NCBI RefSeq assembly: GCF_000400465.1
Contig: NW_008806290.1
Coordinates: 180,001 to 212,000 of the forward strand
Length of the DNA: 32,000 nucleotides
Reading direction: 5' to 3'
DNA from: Wallemia ichthyophaga EXF-994
Lineage: Eukaryota > Fungi > Basidiomycota
Both the position numbers and the translations under genes were made by a program. The stretch's first letter is position 1, and every line of letters begins with the position of its first letter. The notes beneath the pieces were generated by a model, which made no database searches, was not told the origin of the DNA, and worked only from the letters and a program-made list of their open reading frames with translations. Positions 5,908-18,199 of the stretch are shown here, piece by piece.

Positions 5908-6658
5908 TTATGGATGAGCTCTATTTCTCTTACGTGATGAAGGCTGTTGAGGTTTAGTGGAGGAATGCGATTTGTGGTATTGAATAGCTTTAGAGAAGAG
6001 CTGTTGGTGTTGGGTGTTGACGTGGTTGATGTGGTTGATGTGGTTGGCATTACTAACTTCAATGTCGTTGAAGCTGCCGAGAAGCTGTTTGATATTTGCC
6101 GAGTATTGATCGAGGAAGTTTTTCAGAGAGTGTATGTCGATAGAGTGGATGTCTCTCTTTATATTTGAGTGTACAGTGAGCGTATTGCTGAGCTGATTGA
6201 GTTTTCCCTGTATTAGGTTGTTGTTGACTGCGCTAATGAAAAGTTCCTCGACTGATTCGTTCGATTCAAGGTCCAGCTCGAGTCTTAGTCTGGCATATTC
6301 GACGACTCTATCAGAGGAATATGAGGTCATTGAAAGCTGCTTAAGCTTTGAGAGCTGCTTATCGGACAAATCCAGATATATTGATTTGTTATCTGCGACG
6401 TGTGTGAGCACTTGGGAGGCACTAGCAGATAAATCTAACCAGAGAAATCTTTGAAAGTACCGTATGCAAAAAGCTTTAATGTATTTGAATAAATATCGTC
6501 TTGGTCCTTGTACTGAGATTGAGTGAGCAATTTAGCTGTGTAGCGCACAGGACACAGACAGAATCGAGGAATTGGGTGTAATTGAATAAGCCATCATCAT
6601 CAATCAACTTGATTACCGCCTCTCTAACCCGTTCATCTTGTTGATCCAGCGTCATCAT
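5908..6658 (-). CDS. CSN7: COP9 signalosome subunit 7 (PCI domain)
   Basis: Introns 6559-6513 and 6439-6393 give FLDS-YKDQDDIYSNTLKLFAYGTFKDFS-DNKSIYLDLSDKQLSKLKQLSM..EELFISAVNNNLIQGKLNQ..IKRDI, matching the CSN7 LFAYGT and L..GKLDQ....V...GRD pattern. The start is 6658 or 6655. Confidence 0.8.
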
Positions 6659-6682
6659 CGTCGAATTGAAGGATTGTTGAGA

Positions 6683-7374
6683 ATGTCACAGAATCCGTTA
6701 CTTGCACCAATCTACCCTTTGGATCAGCATCCTGAGTTTACGCGTATGGATCCTGTCGATCAATCCAATATGCACGCTGTAAGTCAAGTATTTAGCCAGG
6801 ATAGCGTGTATTCAACCAAATCAGATGCTCAAGTATCAGAAATACATACAACAAGGTATGGAAAGCTGTGCATTCAAGACCGTGTTGTCTGCAGGCGCTG
6901 GGTTCGGTCTTGGTGCTTTCTTCAGCTTAGTGTCTTCTTCATTCGCATTCGACGACCCTTTCAGCAGAACTTCTGAGCTTTCGAGGCAACAGAAGGCCAA
7001 GGAGTTGTTTAAGGATATGGGTAAATCAATGTACAGGCAGGGTAAAGGATTCGGTGCTGTTGGTGGTCTATTTGCCGGTATAGAATGTTGTATTGAAGGC
7101 GTACGTGGTGTTTTATCGCTAATAACATATCATTAATCCCCAACGCTTACAGTATAGAGGTACTAATGACCTCTACAATTCAGCTTCGGCTGGTTTCTTG
7201 TCCGGTGCCATATTATCTAGAAATGCAGGCGTTAAGGCAGCGTTTGGTGGTGGATTTGCATTTGCTGCATTCAGCACAGCTATTGACACGTATATGAGAA
7301 GTGCAGTCAGTATACATTATAGCGTCTTACCGCAACTTCTGACACACAAACAGCCGGCGGATAATGACTACTAA
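6683..7374 (+). CDS. TIM22: Mitochondrial inner-membrane import channel Tim22 (Tim17/22/23 family)
   Basis: Introns 6779-6824, 7101-7152 and 7306-7353. Motifs [52 protein letters not shown] and [21 protein letters not shown]. Confidence 0.93.
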
Positions 7375-7668
7375 TCTTAATACCAAATCATCTATAGACA
7401 AATCATCTAGTGTATTTATACGTAAACTATCCAACCACGATAAGATTTTCACAACAAAATTTTCACGACACACTGATCTTACTTGATTGGAGTGATGAGA
7501 GTATGAGGATGTATTTGAGTACATCTTGAGTGTATAAAGCGTATAATTTGGATAATTTGGATAAATTTACGTAGATTTCCACGATGATCATTAATACGTC
7601 ATTCCATCTAGTAACCAACCCCATTCACATCTCTAACCCAACGACCACAACGATCGACCATTTCGAAA

Positions 7669-10177
7669 ATGACAAAATCTAATGAAAACACAAGGAAGAT
7701 TGCCGTGCTGACTTCTGGCGGAGATGCAGCAGGTGCGCCAATTTAATGTATAGATATAACTGTACACGGCTCACACCTATATCGCAGGAATGAACGCTGC
7801 AGTTAGAGCTGTTGCCAAAATGGGTCTTTACAGAGGCTGTGAGGTGTTTATAGTTCGTGAAGGCTGGGCCGGTTTAGTCGCAGGTAACGTCAACGCTGCT
7901 CCTGCAGATGTACGCCCTCCACCTCAAAGAGCGGGCAAATACCACGGAAATCAAGACGTTGAAGGCGAAAAATTTGCTGCAACCTTCGGTGAAGGTGAGC
8001 TACTCCAAGAGGGCGCTGGTGAAGGCTTGAAGGGTCGCCATATCTTGAAAGTTGGTTGGGATGACGTTCGTGGTTGGATGGATATCGGTGGTACTCTCAT
8101 TGGTACCGCTAGATGCGCGGAATTCCGTGAAAAGGAAGGTCGCGAAACTGCTGCTTTCAACTTGATTAGCCTCGGTATTGACGCTTTGGTTGTTATTGGC
8201 GGTGATGGTTCCCTTACCGGTGCTGACAGATTACGCGGTGAATGGCCTTCCCTTCTCGATGATTTGGAGAAATCGAAGAGAATCTCAGCTGAGCAGCGCA
8301 GTAAACACGCTCATCTTACTATTACTGGTATCGTTGGCTCTATCGATAACGACATGGCTATGACCGATATCACTATTGGTGCTCCAACCGCTTTACATAG
8401 AATTTCTGAAGCTGTTGACTCCATTGGTTCAACCGCTTCTTCTCACTCTAGAGCCTTCGTTGTTGAAGTTATGGGTCGTCATTGCGGTTGGTTGGCCGTC
8501 ATGGCTGGTTTGGCCTGTGGTGCCGACTATATATTCATCCCTGAACGTCCTCCAAAATCTGAGGACTGGGAGAGCGAAATGTGCAACGGCCTCAAGTCTC
8601 ACCGTGAACATGGCAAGAGAAAGACAATTGTTATCGTTGCTGAAGGTGCTTTGGATCGTCAATTGAAGCCAATTAAGCCTGCATATGTTGCAGACATTCT
8701 CACAAAGCGTTTGCAACTCGACACTAGAGTAACTACCCTCGGTCACGTTCAACGTGGTGGTAAGCCATGTGCTTATGATAGACTTTTGGCAACTTTGCAA
8801 GGTGTTGAAGCTGTTGAAGCGGTTTTAGATGCCACCCCACAAACACCAAGCTACATGATTGGGTTAAAGGAAAATAAAGTTAAGAGAGTTAGTTTGATGG
8901 ATGCAGTTAAGGCTACTGCTGGTGTCGGTGATGCTATTGAGAAGAAGGACTTTGACCAAGCACTTCAACTCAGAGATCCAGAGTTCTTGGAGAATCTTGA
9001 AGCATTCGATTACTCGACCATTGTCGGCGATAACAAGCACTTGCCAGAGGGTCAGAGACTTAGAATTGGTATCATTCACGTCGGTGCACCAGCAGGTGGT
9101 ATGAACGCTGCAACCAGAGAAGCAGCAAGATTCTGTTTAGCCAGAGGTCACACTCCATTAGCCATCTACAACGGTTTTGAAGGTCTTTGGGCTGAGGCTG
9201 GAAATGGCGTACAGCCATTATCTTGGTTACAAGTAGACAACTGGTCATCAAGAGGTGGTTCAGAGCTCGGTACCAACAGATCGCTGCCTGCAGATGACTT
9301 GGACAGCACATCGAAGGCATTGCAAAACCACAACATTGATGCACTCTTGATGATTGGTGGTTATGAAGCATACACAGCAATTCAAACACTCAAGAACGCA
9401 AGAACCAACTACCCAGCCTTCCAAATATCAATGGCAGTGATCCCAGCAACATTATCAAACAATGTACCATTGACAGAATTCAGTGTTGGCTCAGACACAG
9501 CATTGAATGCGCTGGTTGATGCATGTGACGCAATCAAGCAATCAGCAGCAGCGTCAAGAAACAGAGTTTTCGTCGTTGAGACACAAGGAGGAAAGTGTGG
9601 ATACTTGGCAACAGTGGGTGCTTTAGCAACTGGAGCTAACATAGTGTACACGCCAGAACTCGGGATGGACTTGGGATTAGTTCAGAGTGATGTGGAGTTC
9701 TTGAAGCGTCGTTTCGCATTGGATGTCAAGGGCAAATCAGATGGTAGATTTATAATCAGAAACGAGAAAGCGTCGTCAGTTTATTCGACAGAGTTCCTCA
9801 CAAACATGCTCAAGGAGGAGGGCAAGGAATTGTTTGACTCAAGAGCAGCGAACCTCGGACACACGTTGCAAGGTGGGACACCATCACCAATTGACAGAGC
9901 TAGAGCATGCAGATTAGCTGTCAGATGTATAAAGTTCTTGGAGGACAACAGCACATCGCGTCAAGCTGGTGCTAAGGATGAGAGTGCAGCTGTGATAGTT
10001 ATAGAAAATGGACAAGTACGATTGGCGCCAGTTGAGGACGTTTCCAAGGTGGCAGACGATAAGAATAGACGTGGAATGGACCCTTGGTGGACACACCTCA
10101 AGCATTTGGTTGAAGTTTTGTCCGGAAGAAGGACGTTAGCGGGTGGTCGTCATCACGAGGAGAGAATGAACAAGTAA
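7669..10177 (+). CDS. PFK1: ATP-dependent 6-phosphofructokinase (eukaryotic tandem-duplicated type)
   Basis: Exon 1 (7669-7732) encodes MTKSNENTRKIAVLTSGGDAAG; intron 7733-7787. Intact motifs GGTLIGTARC, IGGDGSLTGA, GSIDND, EVMGRHCGWL and LGHVQRGG, plus a second regulatory half (VGAPAGGMN, PATLSNN). Confidence 0.98.
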
Positions 10178-10287
10178 ATGTACTTAAAATATAATCTTTA
10201 AATTTAAAATGTTTGTAGCCAAAATTACCTAATCCGATAACCCCATACGCAGTCAAACGCAGTTATCATAGTGACGACGACGATCAA

Positions 10288-11731
10288 ATGCGTTTATTCA
10301 ACAAATATTCCAGCTACGATATGTTGCCTGGGTATAATACACATAAGAATAGGAGAAGGCTTGCCATTTACACGGATAAGCTCAGGCCATCTGCATCTTT
10401 CATCACTGGAATTACCGTGGCTTCCGTTTTGTTTACTTTCCTGTCGATATTCCCAAGAGCTCCACCGTCTATCCCATACGCCTTTGAGGAATTTCAGCCC
10501 GAGAAGCCCGACTGCCTCAGTTGCGGTTTAGATCCCACCGTCGCGCTCATCGACAGCCAGTCGTACATCCAGCCGTATGAGGATCCAGGCATGAACAAGC
10601 ACCTCACAGAATCTCAATGCCTGAACCAATACCCTGGTTTGTTCTATGAGGCGGAAAGAGCTTTGGCTTATTGGTCGGAGCGTGGTGGTATCACGCTGAA
10701 GCACTTGGATAAAGCTTCAGAGAAGGCACACGGGAGGGTTGTAATACACAACAACAGAGTGGGTTGGCTGTTTGGAAATAGCCTTTCTAACAAGACGTTT
10801 ATAGATGTTTGTGAAGGAATTCAGTCATAACGATGTCAATACTAGAGCTTTGGCTACATTTGCGGCTATTCATGAAGCTCTGCTCACTTCAACAGAGGCT
10901 TTTCCAAATGTGGAATTCACGTTCCAAGTTCAAGACGCCGGTGATTCCGAAGATGAACCTATACCAACACTTGTCCTCGACAGGACAGCCGATCAGCCTG
11001 AATTGTGGCTCATGCCCGACTTCGGGTTCTGGTCGTGGCCTGAACCTAAGGTAGGAAGCTTTGGTGAGGTGAGGGATAAGGCAGGTAAATGGGAATCTAA
11101 ACACAGCTGGTCGGAGAAGCTACCAAAACTTTTCTGGAGAGGTGCATCACTTGATCGTGAAATACGTAAGCAATTGATCAATGCAGCAAACGGGTATGCT
11201 TGGTCAGATGTCAAGATGATGGATTGGGGTAATATCCAGCCTGGTGATTTGTTGACAATGGAGGAGCATTGCGGGTATCAGTTCTTGGTGCATGTTGAAG
11301 GCGTAGCTTACTCAGGTAGACTCAAGTATCTTCTTCAATGCCACTCCGTCTCTGTGATGCATGAACTAAAGTTCATTCAACACTTCCATCACTTGTTGGA
11401 CGGCAATTCTACATCAGCTGACCAAAACGTCGTTGTTGTTCCACTGCCAGAGAGGAGACCAGGTAGTGAGACGGATCCAAACCCATGGGAACGCCTACCT
11501 GAAGTGATGGAACAGCTCAAGAAGAATCCAGACAGGGTTAAGAGGATTGCAGATAACAGCTGGGAAGGACTGAGGAGTAGGTATTTGACACCATCTGCTA
11601 CTGTTTGCTACTGGAGAAGGCTATTGAGTCTCTGGAGTCAGGCTCAGGCATTTACAGTAAAGGTCGATGACAGTTATATACCTTACGAATCATTCATGTT
11701 GATGAGGACGGTTGATTGGCAGGCACATTAG
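10288..11731 (+). CDS. CAP10-like / glycosyltransferase family 90 protein (putative xylosyltransferase, type II membrane)
   Basis: N-terminal TM segment; intron 10759-10804. Motifs GRVVIHNNR, PNVEF, LWLMPDFGFWSWPE, KLFWRG, EHCGYQFLVHVEGVAYSGRLKYL, HFHHLL and RIADNS. Confidence 0.88.
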
Positions 11732-11922
11732 ACAGAAAAAATTAGAGAAAACCTTTACAATAATTACCGACGTACATACCCATCCCAGACAAGTCATACT
11801 GATTCAAGATGCTGCGAATGCTTGAATACATGAAGAATTAATATGATATTTATTTTAACTTTCTTATACTTGTATGCGTGCTAATTTAGTAGTTTAATAT
11901 GTCATTACTTTGCTTTTTAATA
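11714..11922 (+). repeat. Inverted repeat, copy A (partner at 15621-15812)
   Basis: Colinear with the reverse complement of 15621-15812. Perfect blocks of 23 nt (11776-11798) and 22 nt (11816-11837), with diverged flanks. Includes the last 5 codons and stop of the GT90 gene. Confidence 0.92.
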
Positions 11923-12259
11923 CACGATGCTTTCCAGTCTGCTCTTAGCTAAAGCTGCTCGAGTTCATCCTCACTTGCTTATTCCTTGACGCGTAGAATG
12001 TGCCTTGATAGGTGTTATCACATCAAATCTGAATGATTTCCACGTCGAGACACATGCCTTTATAAAACTTTCTAAAGTATAACTAATTGATGGAATATAC
12101 AAATTGGAGAACATTATAAAAATATATTTTCCTAAATATATTACTCGAAAACTTAGGTTTGAGGTGTTGTTGTGTTTGTCTAGTTATAAAATTTGAGAAT
12201 TGTAAAAGAAAGAATTATACAGTTAGTATTAAAAAGTTGTTGTCGTGACTGATGCATCC

Positions 12260-14237
12260 TTAGCCACCCTTTGGAATAGCCTGACGGTCAGCTTCCTCGT
12301 TGACCAAGTATGCTGGCAAGTTGGCTGCTTCACCCTCTTGCTCAACGTCCTTGGCGTCACTAGTAAGACCGAGACGTGCAGCCTCTGCCTTGACCTCTTC
12401 TGAGGAGAGCTTTGGCATCGAGTTGGCGACCGAGACGTATGATCTGCCTTCAGTGTAACCAAGTGCAAAGATAACATCAATCTCCTCGAGAGATCTACCA
12501 GCAGTCTCTGGGTAGAAGAAGAGGACGATCGGGATGAAACACACGTTGATGATACCTGATACAGTTAGTTAGGGTGCTAAGGAAGTTTTTTTACCCACCG
12601 AAGAAAAGGAAAGTACCCCAGTTGATGGCTGCTAACATAGGAGGTGTCCACTGTACAACTGCAAAGTTCCACGACCAGCTGGAAAAATTTCAATGAGCCG
12701 TTATACCTTGCTATAAGCATTGTACTTACTTGCTCATGGTGGAGATAGCGTTTGCGTTGGTACGGATACGAAGTGGGTTGATCTCGGCTGGGTAGAGCCA
12801 AGGGAGTTCGAGCCAGGTGGCACCAAAGAAGGCCAAGAAGAGGAATTGTCCGAGGACAGATCCGTTCAAGACGTTCTGTGCGTGGTCGGTTGGACCTTCT
12901 AGACCGAATGGGATGGTGCAGCCCATGAGAATAAACATAGACATGGCCTGTCCGACAGAACCGACCAAGAACATCTTGCGGCGACCGACCTTCTCGATAA
13001 TGAAGTACGAGATACATGCGCAGAGGGCATATACGGAAATGTTGACACCAGCAAGGATAAGCGCGAGCTTACGTTCCAAACCGAGGTACTCCTCGAAAAT
13101 GAGTGGGGAGAAGTAGATGACTGCGTTACAACCGCCTATCTGCTGGAAAACTTGAGATGAGGCACCGAGGAGAGTTCTGCGCAAGTGTTGGGTCTTGCCA
13201 CCGGTGAGAACATCACGTCTTCTGGCGGCACCTTGTGTCTCGGTCATCAATCTAATACCGTCAGCCATGATATTAGTGTGGTGGTGTGCTTCGGCGGAAT
13301 CTACTGGAACTGAGTTGAGGGCGGCAACGACGCGTCTACCCTCGTCTTCACGGCCTTTGGAAAGTAACCAACGTGGGGACTCTGGGAGGAATAGAGCACC
13401 ACCGACGAGACCGAAAGCAAATGCTATTTGGAAGGCGATCGGGAATCTCCAGGTGACGTCGGCAGGATCGTAATTGTACGACAAACCAACATCGATCCAG
13501 TATGAAATAACAGTTCCGATAGCAATCATTGACGCTTCAATACAGACCAAGACACCACGGTTGTGTGACTTGGATGTTTCTGCTTGCCATGATGGGATAG
13601 TGGAAGTATTGAGACCATTACCAACTCCGGTAATAACACGTCCAACACAGAATTGCTCTGGCGCGTGATGGCCTCTAAATGCGGTAACTTGAATGATAGT
13701 ACCAATAACCATAACGCCTGCACCAGTAAACATCATACGACGTCTACCCATCCAGTCACCGAAGAGAAGAGCACCGAGAGCACCGAGAAGACAACCGACT
13801 TCGTAAATTGAAGTGTAAGTGGCTTGAATGAGCGCAGCGCGAGAGTGCGCAGGAGTATTTGTAGGAACAACCGAGTCAGTTGTATCTGAATATCCGAATT
13901 TATCATGTTGATATGATGGATTCACTGCAGGGAAAGTATCTCCGAACTGCTCTGAGGTGATCAATCCGGCCATGACACCTTGATCTGTGCGGGTTCACGT
14001 GTTAGCGGAGTATTTACGCGTCAAAACGCCACAACGCACCATAACCGAAAAGCAGGAAACCGGTAGTTGCAGTGGCAGAGATAAGCCACACAAGTTTATT
14101 CCCGTGGGCGCCCATGACTGAATAATTGGCATGAATACAAATTTGCAAAGCAGCAGGACAAACGACTCACACGTTGGGATGGATCCATCATCGTACTGAG
14201 GCTGCTCTACCTCCTCCTTGTTTTCTTTGCGAGCCAT
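12260..14237 (-). CDS. STL1: MFS sugar porter, STL1-like glycerol/H+ symporter
   Basis: Introns 14170-14118, 14039-13985, 12729-12679 and 12598-12556. Motifs TGFLLFGYDQGVMAGLI, IYEVGC, GRRR, GRVITGVGNGLNTSTIPSWQAE, WRFPIAFQ, PESPRWL, QQIGGCN, YPAEINPLRIR and PETAGRSLEEID. Closeness to Stl1 is from recalled similarity; the substrate is not proven. Confidence 0.8.
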
Positions 14238-15284
14238 TGTGGTTGTTTGCGGAGAAGCGAGTAGCTGGAAAGAATTGGATGAAATAATTTAAAATGTCCA
14301 ATTGCGGGGCTAGTTACATACTAATGTGGTTATTTCCCAAAAAGGAATTCGATTTAATTGGTGCGGCCGGATTTGTAACTCCGCGGAAACGCTATGATAC
14401 TCAGTTTTCTCTGCGTGACTTTGTTGCTACTCTGCGTCCTGCCAATCCTTTGTGTTCCTTAGATATGACGTCTGCGTTTTTAATTGATGTCTCTCTGCAG
14501 TACGAATAAGCGAGGATATCTGCACACATGACTTGTGGAGCGTGTCTGATTACACATATATTCTTTGATCTGCATGTATTCTATTTTTACAGCCTATATT
14601 CCGCCTCACGTGCACAAGATGCTCGGAAACGGGGCCTGAGCTGCTCGACAGGGACACAAAAAATCTGCAAAACTGCGAATCAATCGGGTATAAGATTTTT
14701 ATTTCAAATTTCAGCAGCCACAATATGCGGTTGTTATTTATAGCCGCAATACTAGTCTCACTATTCCCTCTTATCCCAGGAATGGTCCTTCGAAGATGAG
14801 CCTAAGCGAGCGCGAAGGCGGTGGACGCGAAGGGAAAAACGCGGGTGGTGGCGGGAATTGTCGGAGTTGAATAATGTGTTTCTAAGGAGTATATGTGTTC
14901 ATTCTCAGCTGTTGCTTTACACCGCAGATCATTTGCGCTCACGTGTAATGCTTACTAAGCGTCTGAACCTGCCGGAGACAACTCCAAAACACCGCGTAAT
15001 ACTGTATTAAATGCTACGACCACTCCAAAAGAGTGACATACACTTTAGCAGACGTCAGCAGGTGTCAGTGCGGGTGCAGATCACCGGATTATTCGGAGCG
15101 ACAGGGAGTGCTAGCGAGTGCTTGCTACGAAGCACAGCACTCCATTCACGCAAAATAAAACCTACGATGCACCCTTGAAACTCCGGCACACGTCAAATCA
15201 CATCCAATGAACAGCCACTTGACAGATCTGCAGAGGTATAAAATGTGTCATTACGTTATTACGAAATACAAACAAATATCATTT

Positions 15285-15608
15285 TTATGACGCTGCTGCC
15301 TGCGTAGCCTGCTGCCTCATCTCCAGCATCCGTCTCTTAATAAAGTAATCAATCTGATGCAGCTGTGAGCGCGGTACTTTTACGCTTTACACTCTACACA
15401 CCCAGCTAGCCGCACACGCTCCCTCATACGCCTTAAACTCCCTCGGACACATCCTCTTTATCTCCTCGTTGTCGCTCGTCGGCGTCGACCCAAGGCAGTC
15501 GAATAGCTTGTCTCGCGCACTCCAGCACGCCTGGCGCTCCTCTCTCGTAAGAGTTTTGGCTTTCGAAGACGGCACGTCCTTATCCTCTGACTTGAATGGC
15601 CACCACAT
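15285..15608 (-). CDS. COA6: Cytochrome c oxidase assembly factor Coa6 (COX6B-like CX9C-CX10C protein)
   Basis: REERQACWSARDKLFDCL..C...FKAYEGACAASW, then intron 15401-15354, then IDYFIKRR..stop at 15287-15285. Confidence 0.85.
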
Positions 15609-15620
15609 CTTGATCGATTA

Positions 15621-15812
15621 TATTCAAAAGCACAGAGCAATTATTTATCTTACTATTAATTTAGCGCGCGTAAAAGTATAACAAAGTTAAAAATAATATT
15701 TTTCTTCATGTATTCAAGCATTCACAATATGACTTGTCTGGGATGGGTATAGACGTCGATAATTATTTCAAGGCTTATCTCCAAGGACTTCTATCTAATG
15801 TGTTTGCAAATC
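15621..15812 (-). repeat. Inverted repeat, copy B (partner at 11714-11922)
   Basis: Perfect blocks at 15728-15750 and 15702-15723 match copy A in reverse complement. The repeat ends about 12 nt upstream of the COA6 ATG. Confidence 0.92.
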
Positions 15813-17150
15813 TTTGAGTTACTGGCTTATTCCTGGACAATCCCCATTCTCGTACTCGCTCTGAATGGGTGCAAACAGCATCGTGCGAGATTCTTGAGGT
15901 AAACAAATGTGCCAACGCACAAGAGTATAGCAGAATAAGCAGAGCATACCTTATGCAATAATGTCTGCCAGATTTTAATTTGTCCGGTTTCCATTTACAA
16001 GGATAATTCTTAGCTAGTACAATCTAATTAAGACACTTTGCTTCTTTTCTAATACTGGCGCAATTACAACTTGGCAATCACATCAAGTCACCTTTGCTCC
16101 CACCTAGCCCAGAATCAACAACATTGCACCCAGCTCAAGCAGTCTTCTGAACATGTCGATCAGTGCGACTTGTCAGCAATCATATTTCACTATTGGTATG
16201 TTTCGTACAATGCTACATCAACCATCATATCCATCACAGCATTAATATCAAGCTTGGTCGTCTCCTCATCCTCTTTTAGAGTAGCCCTTGAGCGAGGCCG
16301 TTTGATCCCTTGGAGTCCCGATTTTATACATTGTCGACGAAAGACTCCCCAGCAACACTTCAATTTTGGTAAAGACATCTGCATAATGTCTCTCTTTCCC
16401 CTGCAACGTCTTTAGTGTGTTTAACAGATGTGGCGTTGGTAATATAAGTTGTCGTATGTCGGTGTTTGGAATATTGACTGAACCATTCTCCTTCATCTTC
16501 TCAATCTCGAGGTTAGACTCTCTAAGATGGCGAGAAATAGCGTCGAGACGGCGCGGTAGGGTCAGTAACAACATCGGAAGCTTTAGGCATTCACTTGTCG
16601 TTACTGCTGAAGAAGGTATTGTGCCGCATGTCTGAATTGGACGTGTGAGCGTCGTAGGCTGATTACGCTCTACTCACTTCTGTAGACAATCAGTCGTGTT
16701 AGTCCTGACGCTATTCTCGGGTGCGCGCAGAATTCCATTAAGTGACATTAGTTGCATGTCTTCGGAGGCTCCTTCAGGCCGTTCAAGGCTACTAACACAA
16801 GAACAAGACGAGTATGTCGATCTGACGAGCTCCCAGCCGAGCCACTATGTGATGTGCTACCAAACGAATATGCTTGTACAACAGCCTGCCAAGTGTTAGT
16901 GCAAATACCGCTGCGTTTATCCTCATTGTTGGTCTTAATGGTTCTAAATCATACCCATTTACGACGTCAATACAAAGATTAGATTTATGTTCTACTTTCA
17001 AATCAACTAGCCAGCGCTATCTCATCCAGACACTATACTTCCTCTTCCTGTAACCTTTCAATGACTTGTTTACGGCGATGTCTCTATGTTATCTGATTTG
17101 TATATTGCACAAATTATCCAAAAATTTATGAGATTTGCTAGAGACATGTA
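15813..17150 (-). pseudogene. Decayed coding-like region (pseudogene or transposon relic), product unidentified
   Basis: About 1.3 kb with only short, frame-shifting ORF pieces (16266-16574, 16190-16384, 16792-17001) in an otherwise tightly packed genome. There is a canonical-looking 46-nt intron at 16677-16632 (GTGAGT..CTCAC..TTCAG), but no continuous frame could be built. Confidence 0.35.
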
Positions 17151-17233
17151 TATAAGATATTGAAATAAAAGAAATAGGTATGCAGGGAATTCAGGGAAGA
17201 GGATCATTCTCATGACATATATAAAACCACACT

Positions 17234-18199
17234 CTAAGCTTGGAGTTGAATGTGTTCAAGCACACGCTCACGCACGCGTCCATCGGATGGAGACGTCTTG
17301 AGCAGCCACTCGGCATCGGTGACGAGCCAGCTCCACCACCACACGGCCAGAGGGGCAGTAGCAGCGTGCCAGAGGGCGTGAGCGTCGAGAGATCTGCCAA
17401 TGGGGACGAACTCGAGCAGCTCGAGGCTAAGCGCGACCATAGTGAGAGCGACGAGGGCGACGGGGGTGTAAGGCGCGGGGTGAGATAGACATTGTGATTT
17501 AACGTGTTTCCTCCTCCGCATGTACTCCCTCAGACACCACCCGAGCCAGAGCAAATTATGCAGCATGCCGGCCGCGATGACGACAGTGAGATGCCACCCA
17601 TAGTCGATGCGTTTGCTGGAGAGTGTGGAGAGGGAGTGCAATGCATACACGAGCCCCAAACAGACGGTAGACGCGAAGAATGACACGTGGCACACTCTCA
17701 CCAACGCCACGTTCAGTCCTGCGAACACAGCCGCCCCTGCAGCGAGGTAGTCAAGCCGCTCCGTGAAGGCCACGTCGCGCGTATGGAAGACACTGCTAGC
17801 TACCCACGCCCCCATTTGCACGTACGCGAGAAGTGCATAAACGCGGCGGGACGGCTGCGCAACGCGCCGACGCACCAATGCCAGTCCCCGCCGATGGGCG
17901 AGTAGGTTGAGCAGCGAGAACAGCGTCGAGAGTGGCTCCTGTATCCCGAACACAGCGTAGAAGGGCCACTTCCCATAGTATTGCGCTACGAGGTGGCGCG
18001 GTTGCACGTCTACTTGTTCGTGCATGCATTTGTAGCGGCATAGGTCCGTTGTTGTCCATAGTAACGTGCGCGTGGGCGGTGCTGTTAAACACTTGCGCAC
18101 GCATAAGCGGAACGCTGGCTGCCGGTCACCGTATGAGGCGAGAACGCTCGTTGCAAGTAGTATCACCAACACCACCAGCTGTGCACTTGGTCTGCCCAT
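17234..18199 (-). CDS. PER1: Per1/PGAP3 GPI-anchor lipid remodelling protein
   Basis: Signal peptide, then ASYGDR..F..CV.KC, W....CRYKCMH, QYYGKWPF..VFGIQEPLSTLFSLLN, SSVFHTRD..TERLDY and LDAHALWH (CREST-superfamily His motifs). Single exon. Confidence 0.93.
   Translation of the reverse strand: MGRPSAQLVVLVILLATSVLASYGDRQPAFRLCVRKCLTAPPTRTLLWTTTDLCRYKCMHEQVDVQPRHLVAQYYGKWPFYAVFGIQEPLSTLFSLLNLLAHRRGLALVRRRVAQPSRRVYALLAYVQMGAWVASSVFHTRDVAFTERLDYLAAGAAVFAGLNVALVRVCHVSFFASTVCLGLVYALHSLSTLSSKRIDYGWHLTVVIAAGMLHNLLWLGWCLREYMRRRKHVKSQCLSHPAPYTPVALVALTMVALSLELLEFVPIGRSLDAHALWHAATAPLAVWWWSWLVTDAEWLLKTSPSDGRVRERVLEHIQLQA

Follow-up and report, generated by a model that had tools for sequence, protein, structure and literature searches.

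Two genes of Wallemia ichthyophaga EXF-994, encoding an STL1-like transporter and COA6, lie between the arms of a diverged inverted repeat. An earlier note on this DNA offered three readings: duplicated breakpoints of an old inversion, the termini of a mobile element, or a substrate for flipping the block. Which of these accounts for the locus is the question addressed here. Our analysis indicates that the repeat is very probably a scar, the duplicated breakpoint of one old, fixed micro-inversion of COA6–STL1 in the W. ichthyophaga lineage. The window, the whole 32,000-nt stretch analysed, is identical in sequence to KE007240.1:180001-212000, and all positions refer to it (Table 1).

Table 1. 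Features of the GT90–PER1 region, with positions in the window
Feature	Position	Strand	Remarks
GT90 (CAP10-like glycosyltransferase), intact; segment A and first 18 nt of B	10321..11731	+	Pfam PF05686, E 5e-26; annotated in EXF-994
Copy A (segment B)	11714..11922	+	Last 18 nt of GT90 CDS and 191 nt of 3' flank
D', decayed inverted duplicate of PER1 3' coding end and 3' flank	11923..12114	+	Reads in PER1 sense
STL1 3' flank, start of inverted segment C'	12115..12259	-	W. mellicola STL1 3' flank homology extends to 12122
STL1-like MFS sugar/polyol transporter, EOQ99617.1	12260..14237	-	Pfam Sugar_tr, E 2e-80; orientation inverted relative to other Wallemia
COA6–STL1 spacer, inside inversion	14238..15284	-	72-75% identity to L016 and L019
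COA6 (cytochrome c oxidase assembly factor 6), EOQ99618.1	15285..15608	-	Pfam COX6B; annotated; inverted relative to other Wallemia
Copy B (segment B')	15621..15812	-	GT90 stop-codon relic DLQTH* and spacer directly upstream of COA6
Segment X, between B' and D, 1,273 nt	15813..17085	-	Holds frameshifted dynamitin relic
D, PER1 3' flank and final 211 nt of PER1 CDS; functional original of D'	17086..17444	-	
PER1, intact, outside inversion (segments D, E)	17234..18199	-	Pfam PF04080 (Per1), E 5e-78

The two arms of the repeat

BLASTN of copy A against the window returned copy B as its reverse complement (E 2e-31, 73% identity over 211 columns), confirming the repeat of about 200 bp that had been described. 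The repeat has two copies in the whole window, with an arm-to-arm distance of 3,698 nt. In a global alignment, the copies agree at 154 of 190 aligned bases (81%) and differ by four indels (13, 2, 4 and 2 nt); the earlier note had recorded the 13-nt indel and did not mention the other three. A repeat search resolved the pair into three colinear inverted blocks (11714-11801/15725-15812, 11813-11837/15702-15726 and 11846-11912/15633-15699).

The arms are composed of a gene end and its spacer. Copy A begins with the final 18 nt of the GT90 ORF (DWQAH*), and the GT90 C-terminus reads VDWQAH* here and TDWQAH* or TDWSAH* in relatives. Copy B contains GATTTGCAAACACATTAG and, as previously recognized, a counterpart of this C-terminus. 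It also lies, as stated earlier, directly upstream of COA6, its end falling 12 nt short of the ATG at 15608. Allowing one mismatch, a 13-nt motif, AATAATTACCGAC, recurs in both arms and in the sequence between GT90 and COA6 in W. mellicola, L016 and L017.

The two perfect blocks noted before, of 23 and 22 nt, each occur a single time in either arm, and a search of the window at up to three mismatches gave no further site (shuffle expectation 0). These cores are only mildly unusual. The earlier proposal that they hint at gene conversion or selection is weakly supported: the pair is improbable by chance (P 0.006), whereas a single perfect run this long in the arms is not unusual alone (P 0.14), core 2 is imperfect in other strains, and the cores are absent from the relatives' spacers with up to six substitutions allowed. 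The 23-nt core is the same in both arms in all five strains compared. It is possible, if doubtful, that the 13-nt motif and the 23-nt core form one compact element kept by selection in both copies after duplication, which in the ancestral 190-bp spacer may have combined the GT90 transcription stop with the COA6 promoter boundary.

Two tests spoke against a structured RNA in the arms: an Rfam scan of 11000-17500 gave nothing relevant at E <= 1 (one chance-level lncRNA match lay outside the arms) and the fold of copy A was less stable than that of its shuffles (z = +1.5). A tRNA scan of the window found none, and neither core 1 nor the STL1 protein retrieved any Wallemia in scans of JGI metagenomes.

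Gene order in Wallemia and the PER1 relic

Synteny in relatives, which the earlier note had proposed as a check, was compared across the genus. In W. mellicola (L019, L020) the order is PFK>GT90>COA6>STL1> <PER1 <SLAC1, with PER1 convergent with STL1. L016, a second species of the W. mellicola complex, has PFK>GT90>COA6>STL1, and L017, a third lineage, has GT90>COA6. The order in W. ichthyophaga is PFK>GT90> <STL1 <COA6 <PER1. COA6–STL1 is thus reversed relative to three other Wallemia lineages, and the pair was inverted in W. ichthyophaga. All W. ichthyophaga assemblies compared (seven named) share one orientation; the inversion is fixed in this species.

The direction of the change is recorded at the locus itself. 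The dead GT90 stop relic is contiguous with the region upstream of COA6, so COA6 once followed GT90. Within the genus, the relics together with the three lineages that share the colinear arrangement establish GT90> COA6> STL1> as the ancestral order. Both breakpoint regions are single-copy in W. mellicola.

A second relic pair, missed by the earlier note, derives from the other breakpoint. D' starts one base after the last base of copy A, comes to within 7 nt of the STL1 3' flank, and matches the 3' end of PER1 in two colinear blocks: 11941-11992 against 17434-17382 (75% of 53 nt, E 7e-4) and 12084-12114 against 17116-17086 (81% of 31 nt, E 0.009). Each match is short, but the gapped local score of D against D' is 45.7, compared with 25.2 +/- 3.3 for shuffles, of which 0 of 500 reach 45.7, and a genomic-control maximum of 35.8. 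The codon-aligned relic in D' is LLEFILTCLFLDA, corresponding to LLEFVPIGRSLDA in PER1, and a deletion of about 115 nt in D' has GACGC on its flanks. Identity is 81% for B/B' and about 77% in the D/D' blocks, the latter over only 84 aligned nt; these values would fit a shared origin of the two pairs in a single event. The arm divergence (JC 0.22) is about one quarter of the W. ichthyophaga–W. mellicola divergence at fourfold sites (0.86).

Origin of the inversion

The present layout is A-B-D'-C'-B'-D-E, with C' at 12115-15620 and segment X between B' and D. Each duplicate is made of breakpoint sequence that was ancestrally unique: the GT90 3' end and spacer motif in the arms, and the PER1 3' coding end in D'. 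A single inversion with staggered breaks would produce this arrangement. Starting from GT90> COA6> STL1> <PER1, both ends of the COA6–STL1 segment would have been cut with an offset. Of the proximal cuts, one would lie at least about 18 nt into the GT90 3' end and the other about 12 nt before the COA6 ATG; of the distal cuts, one would lie about 140 nt beyond the end of STL1 and the other about 210 nt into the PER1 3' end. Fill-in and rejoining in reverse, or an equivalent replication template switch, would then have duplicated the stretch between the paired cuts and so produced the order A-B-D'-C'-B'-D-E. It is owing to the duplicates that GT90 still has its final codons and 3' flank (in copy A), that COA6 retains the spacer upstream of it (in copy B) and that the PER1 C-terminus survives (in D). 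What was left over, a GT90 tail in copy B and a PER1 tail in D', would have decayed. Copy A most likely now provides the 3'UTR and terminator of GT90, and copy B the promoter and leader of COA6; the arms probably have no recombination function today.

Segment X separates B' from D by 1,273 nt, a departure from the simple model that needs one extra event. This may have been a capture or insertion at the junction, or the loss of a second X copy beside D'. On its minus strand, at about 16190-16574, X contains a dynamitin (dynactin p50) pseudogene that the earlier note did not report, a frameshifted C-terminal relic. The ORF 16266-16574(-) matches an intermediate protein, P0245 (E 4e-7), which in turn matches Pfam Dynamitin (E 1e-26); Pfam searches of the X ORFs and three-frame translations gave nothing, and the dynamitin link came solely via this intermediate. 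Over 102 codons the relic differs between EXF-994 and L011 by 12 substitutions; 11 change the amino acid, and the start codon is affected (ATG>GTG). No similarity between X and the W. mellicola STL1–PER1 spacer was seen on either strand. A continuation of the GT90 relic beyond copy B was sought in 15813-17085, where comparison with GT90 by tblastx, blastn and gap-tolerant alignment stayed at shuffle level; a possible extension past a 23-nt insertion, ATGGGGATTGTC, was not significant. An 18-nt direct repeat (11973-11990 / 15821-15838) was also observed, and the inversion model does not account for it.

The order of cause and effect could be the reverse, with an older inverted repeat whose arms underwent ectopic homologous recombination. 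Inverted repeats around an inverted segment are the classical recombination substrate, and here the arms bracket the segment exactly. This would nevertheless require that an inverted GT90–COA6 spacer copy had earlier been inserted, in a separate event, precisely at the STL1–PER1 boundary, and it leaves the reciprocal PER1 relic D' directly beside copy A unexplained. Relatives with the ancestral order have a single spacer copy, and Ranz et al. (PMC1885836) argue that inverted duplicates of ancestrally unique breakpoint sequence are inconsistent with recombination within a two-copy repeat; we regard a repeat that came first as improbable. The same layout, A-B-D'-C'-B'-[remnant]-D-E, would also result if an inverted B-C-D copy had been inserted beside B and the original COA6–STL1 later lost, leaving X as its remnant, a sequence of events that would explain the spacer between B' and D. 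By blastn and tblastx, however, X has no similarity to COA6, STL1 or their spacer, and no relic of either gene emerged when X was compared with the rest of the window; X instead carries the dynamitin relic on the opposite strand. As two precise events are needed rather than one, such an origin is very unlikely.

The remaining two readings fare worse. That the arms are terminal inverted repeats of a decayed mobile element, which captured STL1 and COA6, is suggested by geometry alone, an inverted repeat of about 200 bp around a 3.7-kb segment. The arms instead derive from single-copy sequence of the locus itself, the end of the GT90 coding region and its spacer, and in three other lineages the supposed cargo genes are found at this locus with no repeats around them. 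With no transposase among the ORFs, no third arm copy in the window, the compared loci or JGI metagenomes, and only 1.67% repeats in the genome, the chance of a mobile-element origin is close to negligible. A live switch, in which recombination between the arms still flips the STL1–COA6 block, could draw on the shared 23-nt core and on the recombination seen in W. ichthyophaga populations (PMC6738226). Against it stand the single orientation in all assemblies compared and the state of the arms, 81% identical with four indels and a longest perfect block of 23 nt. There is no recombinase gene in the neighbourhood, and the mating-type inversion is the sole departure from synteny that the population study reports for its contigs (PMC6738226). 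Present-day flipping is highly unlikely, and of the earlier alternatives it is the inversion with duplicated breakpoints that fits the gene order of relatives.

Relation to known rearrangements and the genes involved

The locus is a clear but ordinary case of a known rearrangement mechanism, neither a mobile element nor a switch. In Drosophila, breakpoint duplicates range from 46 bp to 1.9 kb, six inversions have both breakpoints duplicated, and the duplicates decay through substitutions and small deletions (Ranz et al. 2007, PMC1885836). As in those staggered-break inversions, ancestrally single-copy gene ends are here duplicated, inverted and placed at opposite ends, at both breakpoints; the duplicates measure 209 nt and about 360 nt, inside the Drosophila range, and the redundant copies decay alike. 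The Drosophila inversions are cytologically visible, whereas this one spans 3.5 kb and two genes in a very compact fungal genome. Its arms are also older (81% against a mean of about 88% identity), and one junction has an extra 1.27-kb segment.

Human dupINVdup variants are usually ascribed to replication template switching. As outlined by Brand et al. 2015 and Collins et al. 2017 (PMC5338099), they likewise combine an inversion with a duplication at each end in one event, but they are recent and of kilobase to megabase size, unlike the ancient, fixed and tiny inversion described here. Among fungi, inversions of one to a few genes between related species, like the present one, are described as widespread in 2000 work as cited in PMC4915352. 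In the W. ichthyophaga inversion, in contrast to that gene-order work, both breakpoints are resolved to within a few bases, and both show the hallmark of staggered breaks, unique sequence duplicated in inverted orientation. The 2000 inversions were reportedly recognized from gene order, with no duplicated breakpoint sequence described. The literature found does not trace small fungal inversions to their origin at the sequence level. Such an inversion can be harmless in a three-quarters-coding genome: although two of the four cuts lay inside genes (GT90 and PER1), the duplications restored both ends. Flip switches based on inverted repeats need long, near-identical repeats, and both orientations occur in a population; the W. 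ichthyophaga locus has neither. It resembles the methylotrophic-yeast mating-type inversion, as cited in PMC6738226, in having inverted repeats around a gene block.

The gene names given in the earlier note, GT90, STL1-like, COA6 and PER1, hold on Pfam and annotation evidence and, for COA6, on matches to the human structures 6NL3 and 6PCE (E 1e-7). EOQ99617.1, annotated in EXF-994 as 'Sugar transporter STL1', is among the four Stl1 homologues given in PMC3849046. Nothing indicates a tie between the inversion and salt adaptation. The transporter is 88% identical to its W. mellicola orthologue, and in the COA6–STL1 spacer conservation with W. mellicola and L016 covers about 290 nt beside the STL1 ATG. 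In the sister species W. hederae, a cluster listing gives the STL1 protein as TIA88853.1.

Arms of the inverted repeat

The window is identical (100%) to positions 180001–212000 of KE007240.1, and its COA6 ORF shares 99% identity with the W. ichthyophaga EXF-994 protein. A repeat search of the window resolved the inverted repeat into three colinear inverted blocks. BLASTN aligned 11714–11922 with 15812–15621 (E 2e-31), the same position at which the earlier note had put the two arms, copy A and copy B. Globally aligned, the arms are identical at 154 of 190 bases (81%) and differ by four indels of 13, 2, 4 and 2 nt. Each arm contains one occurrence of a 23-nt perfect block (core 1) and of a 22-nt perfect block (core 2), and no further copies were found elsewhere in the window with up to three mismatches allowed.

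The first 18 nt of copy A close the GT90 reading frame, and copy B has a match to them, as the earlier note had seen; this match is a dead counterpart of the GT90 tail that includes the stop codon. Only 12 nt separate copy B from the start codon of COA6, confirming its placement directly upstream of that gene. In the COA6 sense, copy B reads as a GT90 tail relic (DLQTH, then stop), a spacer and COA6, which is the arrangement still found in relatives; copy A is the equivalent stretch, still joined to the live GT90. Because copy B matches this arrangement and a motif of the arms recurs in the relatives' spacers, the arms are identified as duplicates of the ancestral GT90 3' end and spacer. The arms matched no relevant Rfam family, and no stable fold was found for copy A.

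The recurrent motif, AATAATTACCGAC (13 nt), is located 27–39 nt past the GT90 stop in copy A; copy B has it with a single mismatch. The GT90–COA6 spacers of at least three other Wallemia lineages (W. mellicola, L016 and L017) contain it on the same strand with at most one mismatch. Outside the motif these spacers are unalignable between species, and AATAATTACCGAC is a candidate cis-element. The idea that the perfect cores hint at conversion or selection is weakly supported. Perfect runs of at least 23 and at least 22 nt together are rare among shuffled alignment columns (P 0.006), and core 1 shows no difference between the arms in all five strains compared. However, one run of at least 23 nt has a P of 0.14, core 2 is altered in four of the strains, once within copy A and three times within copy B, and neither core was found in the relatives' GT90–COA6 spacers. 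The cores are mild evidence for uneven constraint or old conversion patches, and for no more than that.

Features of the locus (window positions unless another locus is named)
Feature	Position	Strand
PFK	7790-10177	+
GT90	10321-11731	+
STL1-like MFS transporter, EOQ99617.1	12260-14237	-
COA6, EOQ99618.1	15285-15608	-
PER1	17234-18199	-
SLAC1-type channel	beyond PER1	
A, GT90 body		
B, copy A	11714-11922	
D', decayed inverted duplicate of D	11923-12114	
C', inverted STL1 and COA6		
B', copy B	15621-15812	
X	15813-17085	
D, PER1 3' end and flank	17086-17444	
E, rest of PER1		
AATAATTACCGAC in copy A	11758-11770	
AATAATTACCGAC in copy B	15756-15768	
AATAATTACCGAC in W. mellicola, L019	8874-8886	
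AATAATTACCGAC in L017	about 695-707	

Gene order and the PER1 relic

In W. mellicola (L019, NCBI; L020, ENA metagenome) the gene order is PFK> GT90> COA6> STL1> <PER1 <SLAC1. L016, of the same species complex and 89% identical to W. mellicola, shows PFK> GT90> COA6> and the beginning of STL1>, while L017, a third and roughly equidistant lineage, shows GT90> COA6>. Only the COA6–STL1 pair is reversed in W. ichthyophaga. The seven named assemblies fetched for this species (EXF-994, five further from NCBI and one from Logan, with two other similar loci left out) share one order, colinear with the window at 98.8–100% identity. Both breakpoint regions are single-copy in W. mellicola. The dead GT90 tail adjoining COA6 shows the colinear GT90> COA6> STL1> order to be ancestral.

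Immediately past copy A, from 11923, comes sequence similar to the PER1 3' end in inverted orientation. Positions 11941–11992 match 17434–17382 (75% of 53 nt) in codon alignment, LLEFILTCLFLDA against PER1 LLEFVPIGRSLDA, and 12084–12114 match 17116–17086 in the PER1 3' flank (81% of 31 nt). The two blocks are colinear with each other. Gap-tolerant local alignment of D with D' scored 45.7, compared to 25.2 ± 3.3 for shuffles (0 of 500 reached this score) and a maximum of 35.8 among 128 genomic control segments. About 115 nt have been deleted from D', with GACGC on the flanks of the deletion. D' ends 7 nt short of 12122, the first position that is homologous to the 3' flank of W. mellicola STL1.

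Just past each arm is one copy of a direct repeat of 18 nt, with 16 positions identical: at 11973–11990 within the PER1 relic D' and at 15821–15838 within a 23-nt 'insertion' in the GT90 relic. The match does not exceed chance expectation over the whole window (E 0.5), yet its placement is odd and falls outside what a simple inversion explains; a short templated insertion at the junction might account for it.

Origin of the inversion

Of the three alternatives in the earlier note, the relatives' gene order, the GT90 relic and the PER1 relic single out the duplicated breakpoints of an old inversion. Staggered breaks at both ends, followed by fill-in and end joining, would have inverted COA6–STL1 and duplicated B and D. 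Two of the four cuts lie within coding sequence, in GT90 and PER1, and it is the duplications at the cuts that kept the four genes intact. The locus has the same reciprocal duplicate pattern as Drosophila inversions, for which Ranz et al. proposed staggered breaks with fill-in and end joining; there the duplicates span 46 bp to 1.9 kb, affect both breakpoints in six cases and decay through substitutions and small deletions (PMC1885836). Its geometry is also that of human dupINVdup variants (PMC5338099). The locus is a well-resolved new example of an already known kind of rearrangement scar. The genome paper gives EOQ99617 among four Stl1 homologues and makes no mention of the COA6–STL1 rearrangement (PMC3849046). 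Substitution divergence (JC) between the arms is 0.22, about a quarter of the 0.86 at W. ichthyophaga–W. mellicola fourfold sites in PFK; if the arms evolve roughly neutrally, the inversion would therefore date within the W. ichthyophaga lineage.

The other two alternatives were rejected. Mobile-element termini are at odds with the arms' content, which is local GT90 end and spacer, with the fact that relatives carry the two genes at this same locus, and with the lack of further copies in the window, the fetched loci and JGI metagenomes. A recombination substrate for active flipping is not supported, given the single orientation in every fetched W. ichthyophaga assembly, the divergence of the arms (81% identity) and a longest perfect block of only 23 nt. 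A population-genomic study found the mating-type region to be the only polymorphic inversion, as to that study's own contigs (PMC6738226). Inversion through recombination between inverted repeats that were already in place fits poorly too: it would put no PER1 relic beside copy A, and a prior insertion at the exact place would be needed.

Segment X and variation around the locus

The 1,273 nt of X, between B' and D, depart from the simple inversion model. No GT90, COA6 or STL1 relics were found in X, nor any similarity to the W. mellicola STL1–PER1 spacer. Its longest ORF (16266–16574, minus strand) matches an ENA protein (E 4e-7) which Pfam identifies as a C-terminal portion of dynamitin (E 1e-26), and the homology carries on in another frame, which indicates a frameshift. 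When EXF-994 is compared with the Logan strain L011, the ORF shows 12 substitutions in 102 codons; 11 are amino-acid-changing, one of them ATG to GTG. Together with the frameshift, these changes indicate that X holds a C-terminal pseudogene of dynamitin (dynactin p50), evolving without constraint between strains. The EXF-994 annotation has only a 33-aa gene in X. W. ichthyophaga lacks hyphal growth. Capture or insertion of a fragment at the B'–D junction is slightly favoured, as dynamitin is absent from the 10 kb around the locus in W. mellicola. An ancestral dynamitin between STL1 and PER1, duplicated along with D and later deleted on the D' side, also fits.

The approximately 290 nt that precede the start codon of STL1 (14238–14526) are 72–75% identical to W. 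mellicola and L016, whereas the remaining intergenic DNA is unalignable between the three. Translated matches fall in several frames on both strands, suggesting a conserved non-coding leader or promoter and not an exon. In another Wallemia lineage (L001–L009, ENA/Logan metagenomes), the GT90 stop is followed, some 450 bp further downstream, by an ORF that has an RNase H-like domain (L001, 10583–11640), and most of these contigs stop at it. By eye, the ORF looks like a retroelement, and a second lineage would therefore have undergone its own, independent disturbance of the GT90 3' flank. Protein cluster P0124 includes NCBI entries under the name W. ichthyophaga, among them E3P81_00987 and E3P96_02460, that have 590 aa, as in the W. 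mellicola form, instead of 591 aa; differing annotation or mislabelled strains could be the cause.

Across 6500–17000, EXF-994 and L011 differ at about 1–2 positions per 500 bp in PFK and GT90 and at about 10–14 per 500 bp from 11.9 kb on. The step falls at the left inversion junction, and the higher zone takes in the STL1 coding region. It may reflect no more than a recombination mosaic, given that LD in W. ichthyophaga decays over about 1.3 kb (PMC6738226).
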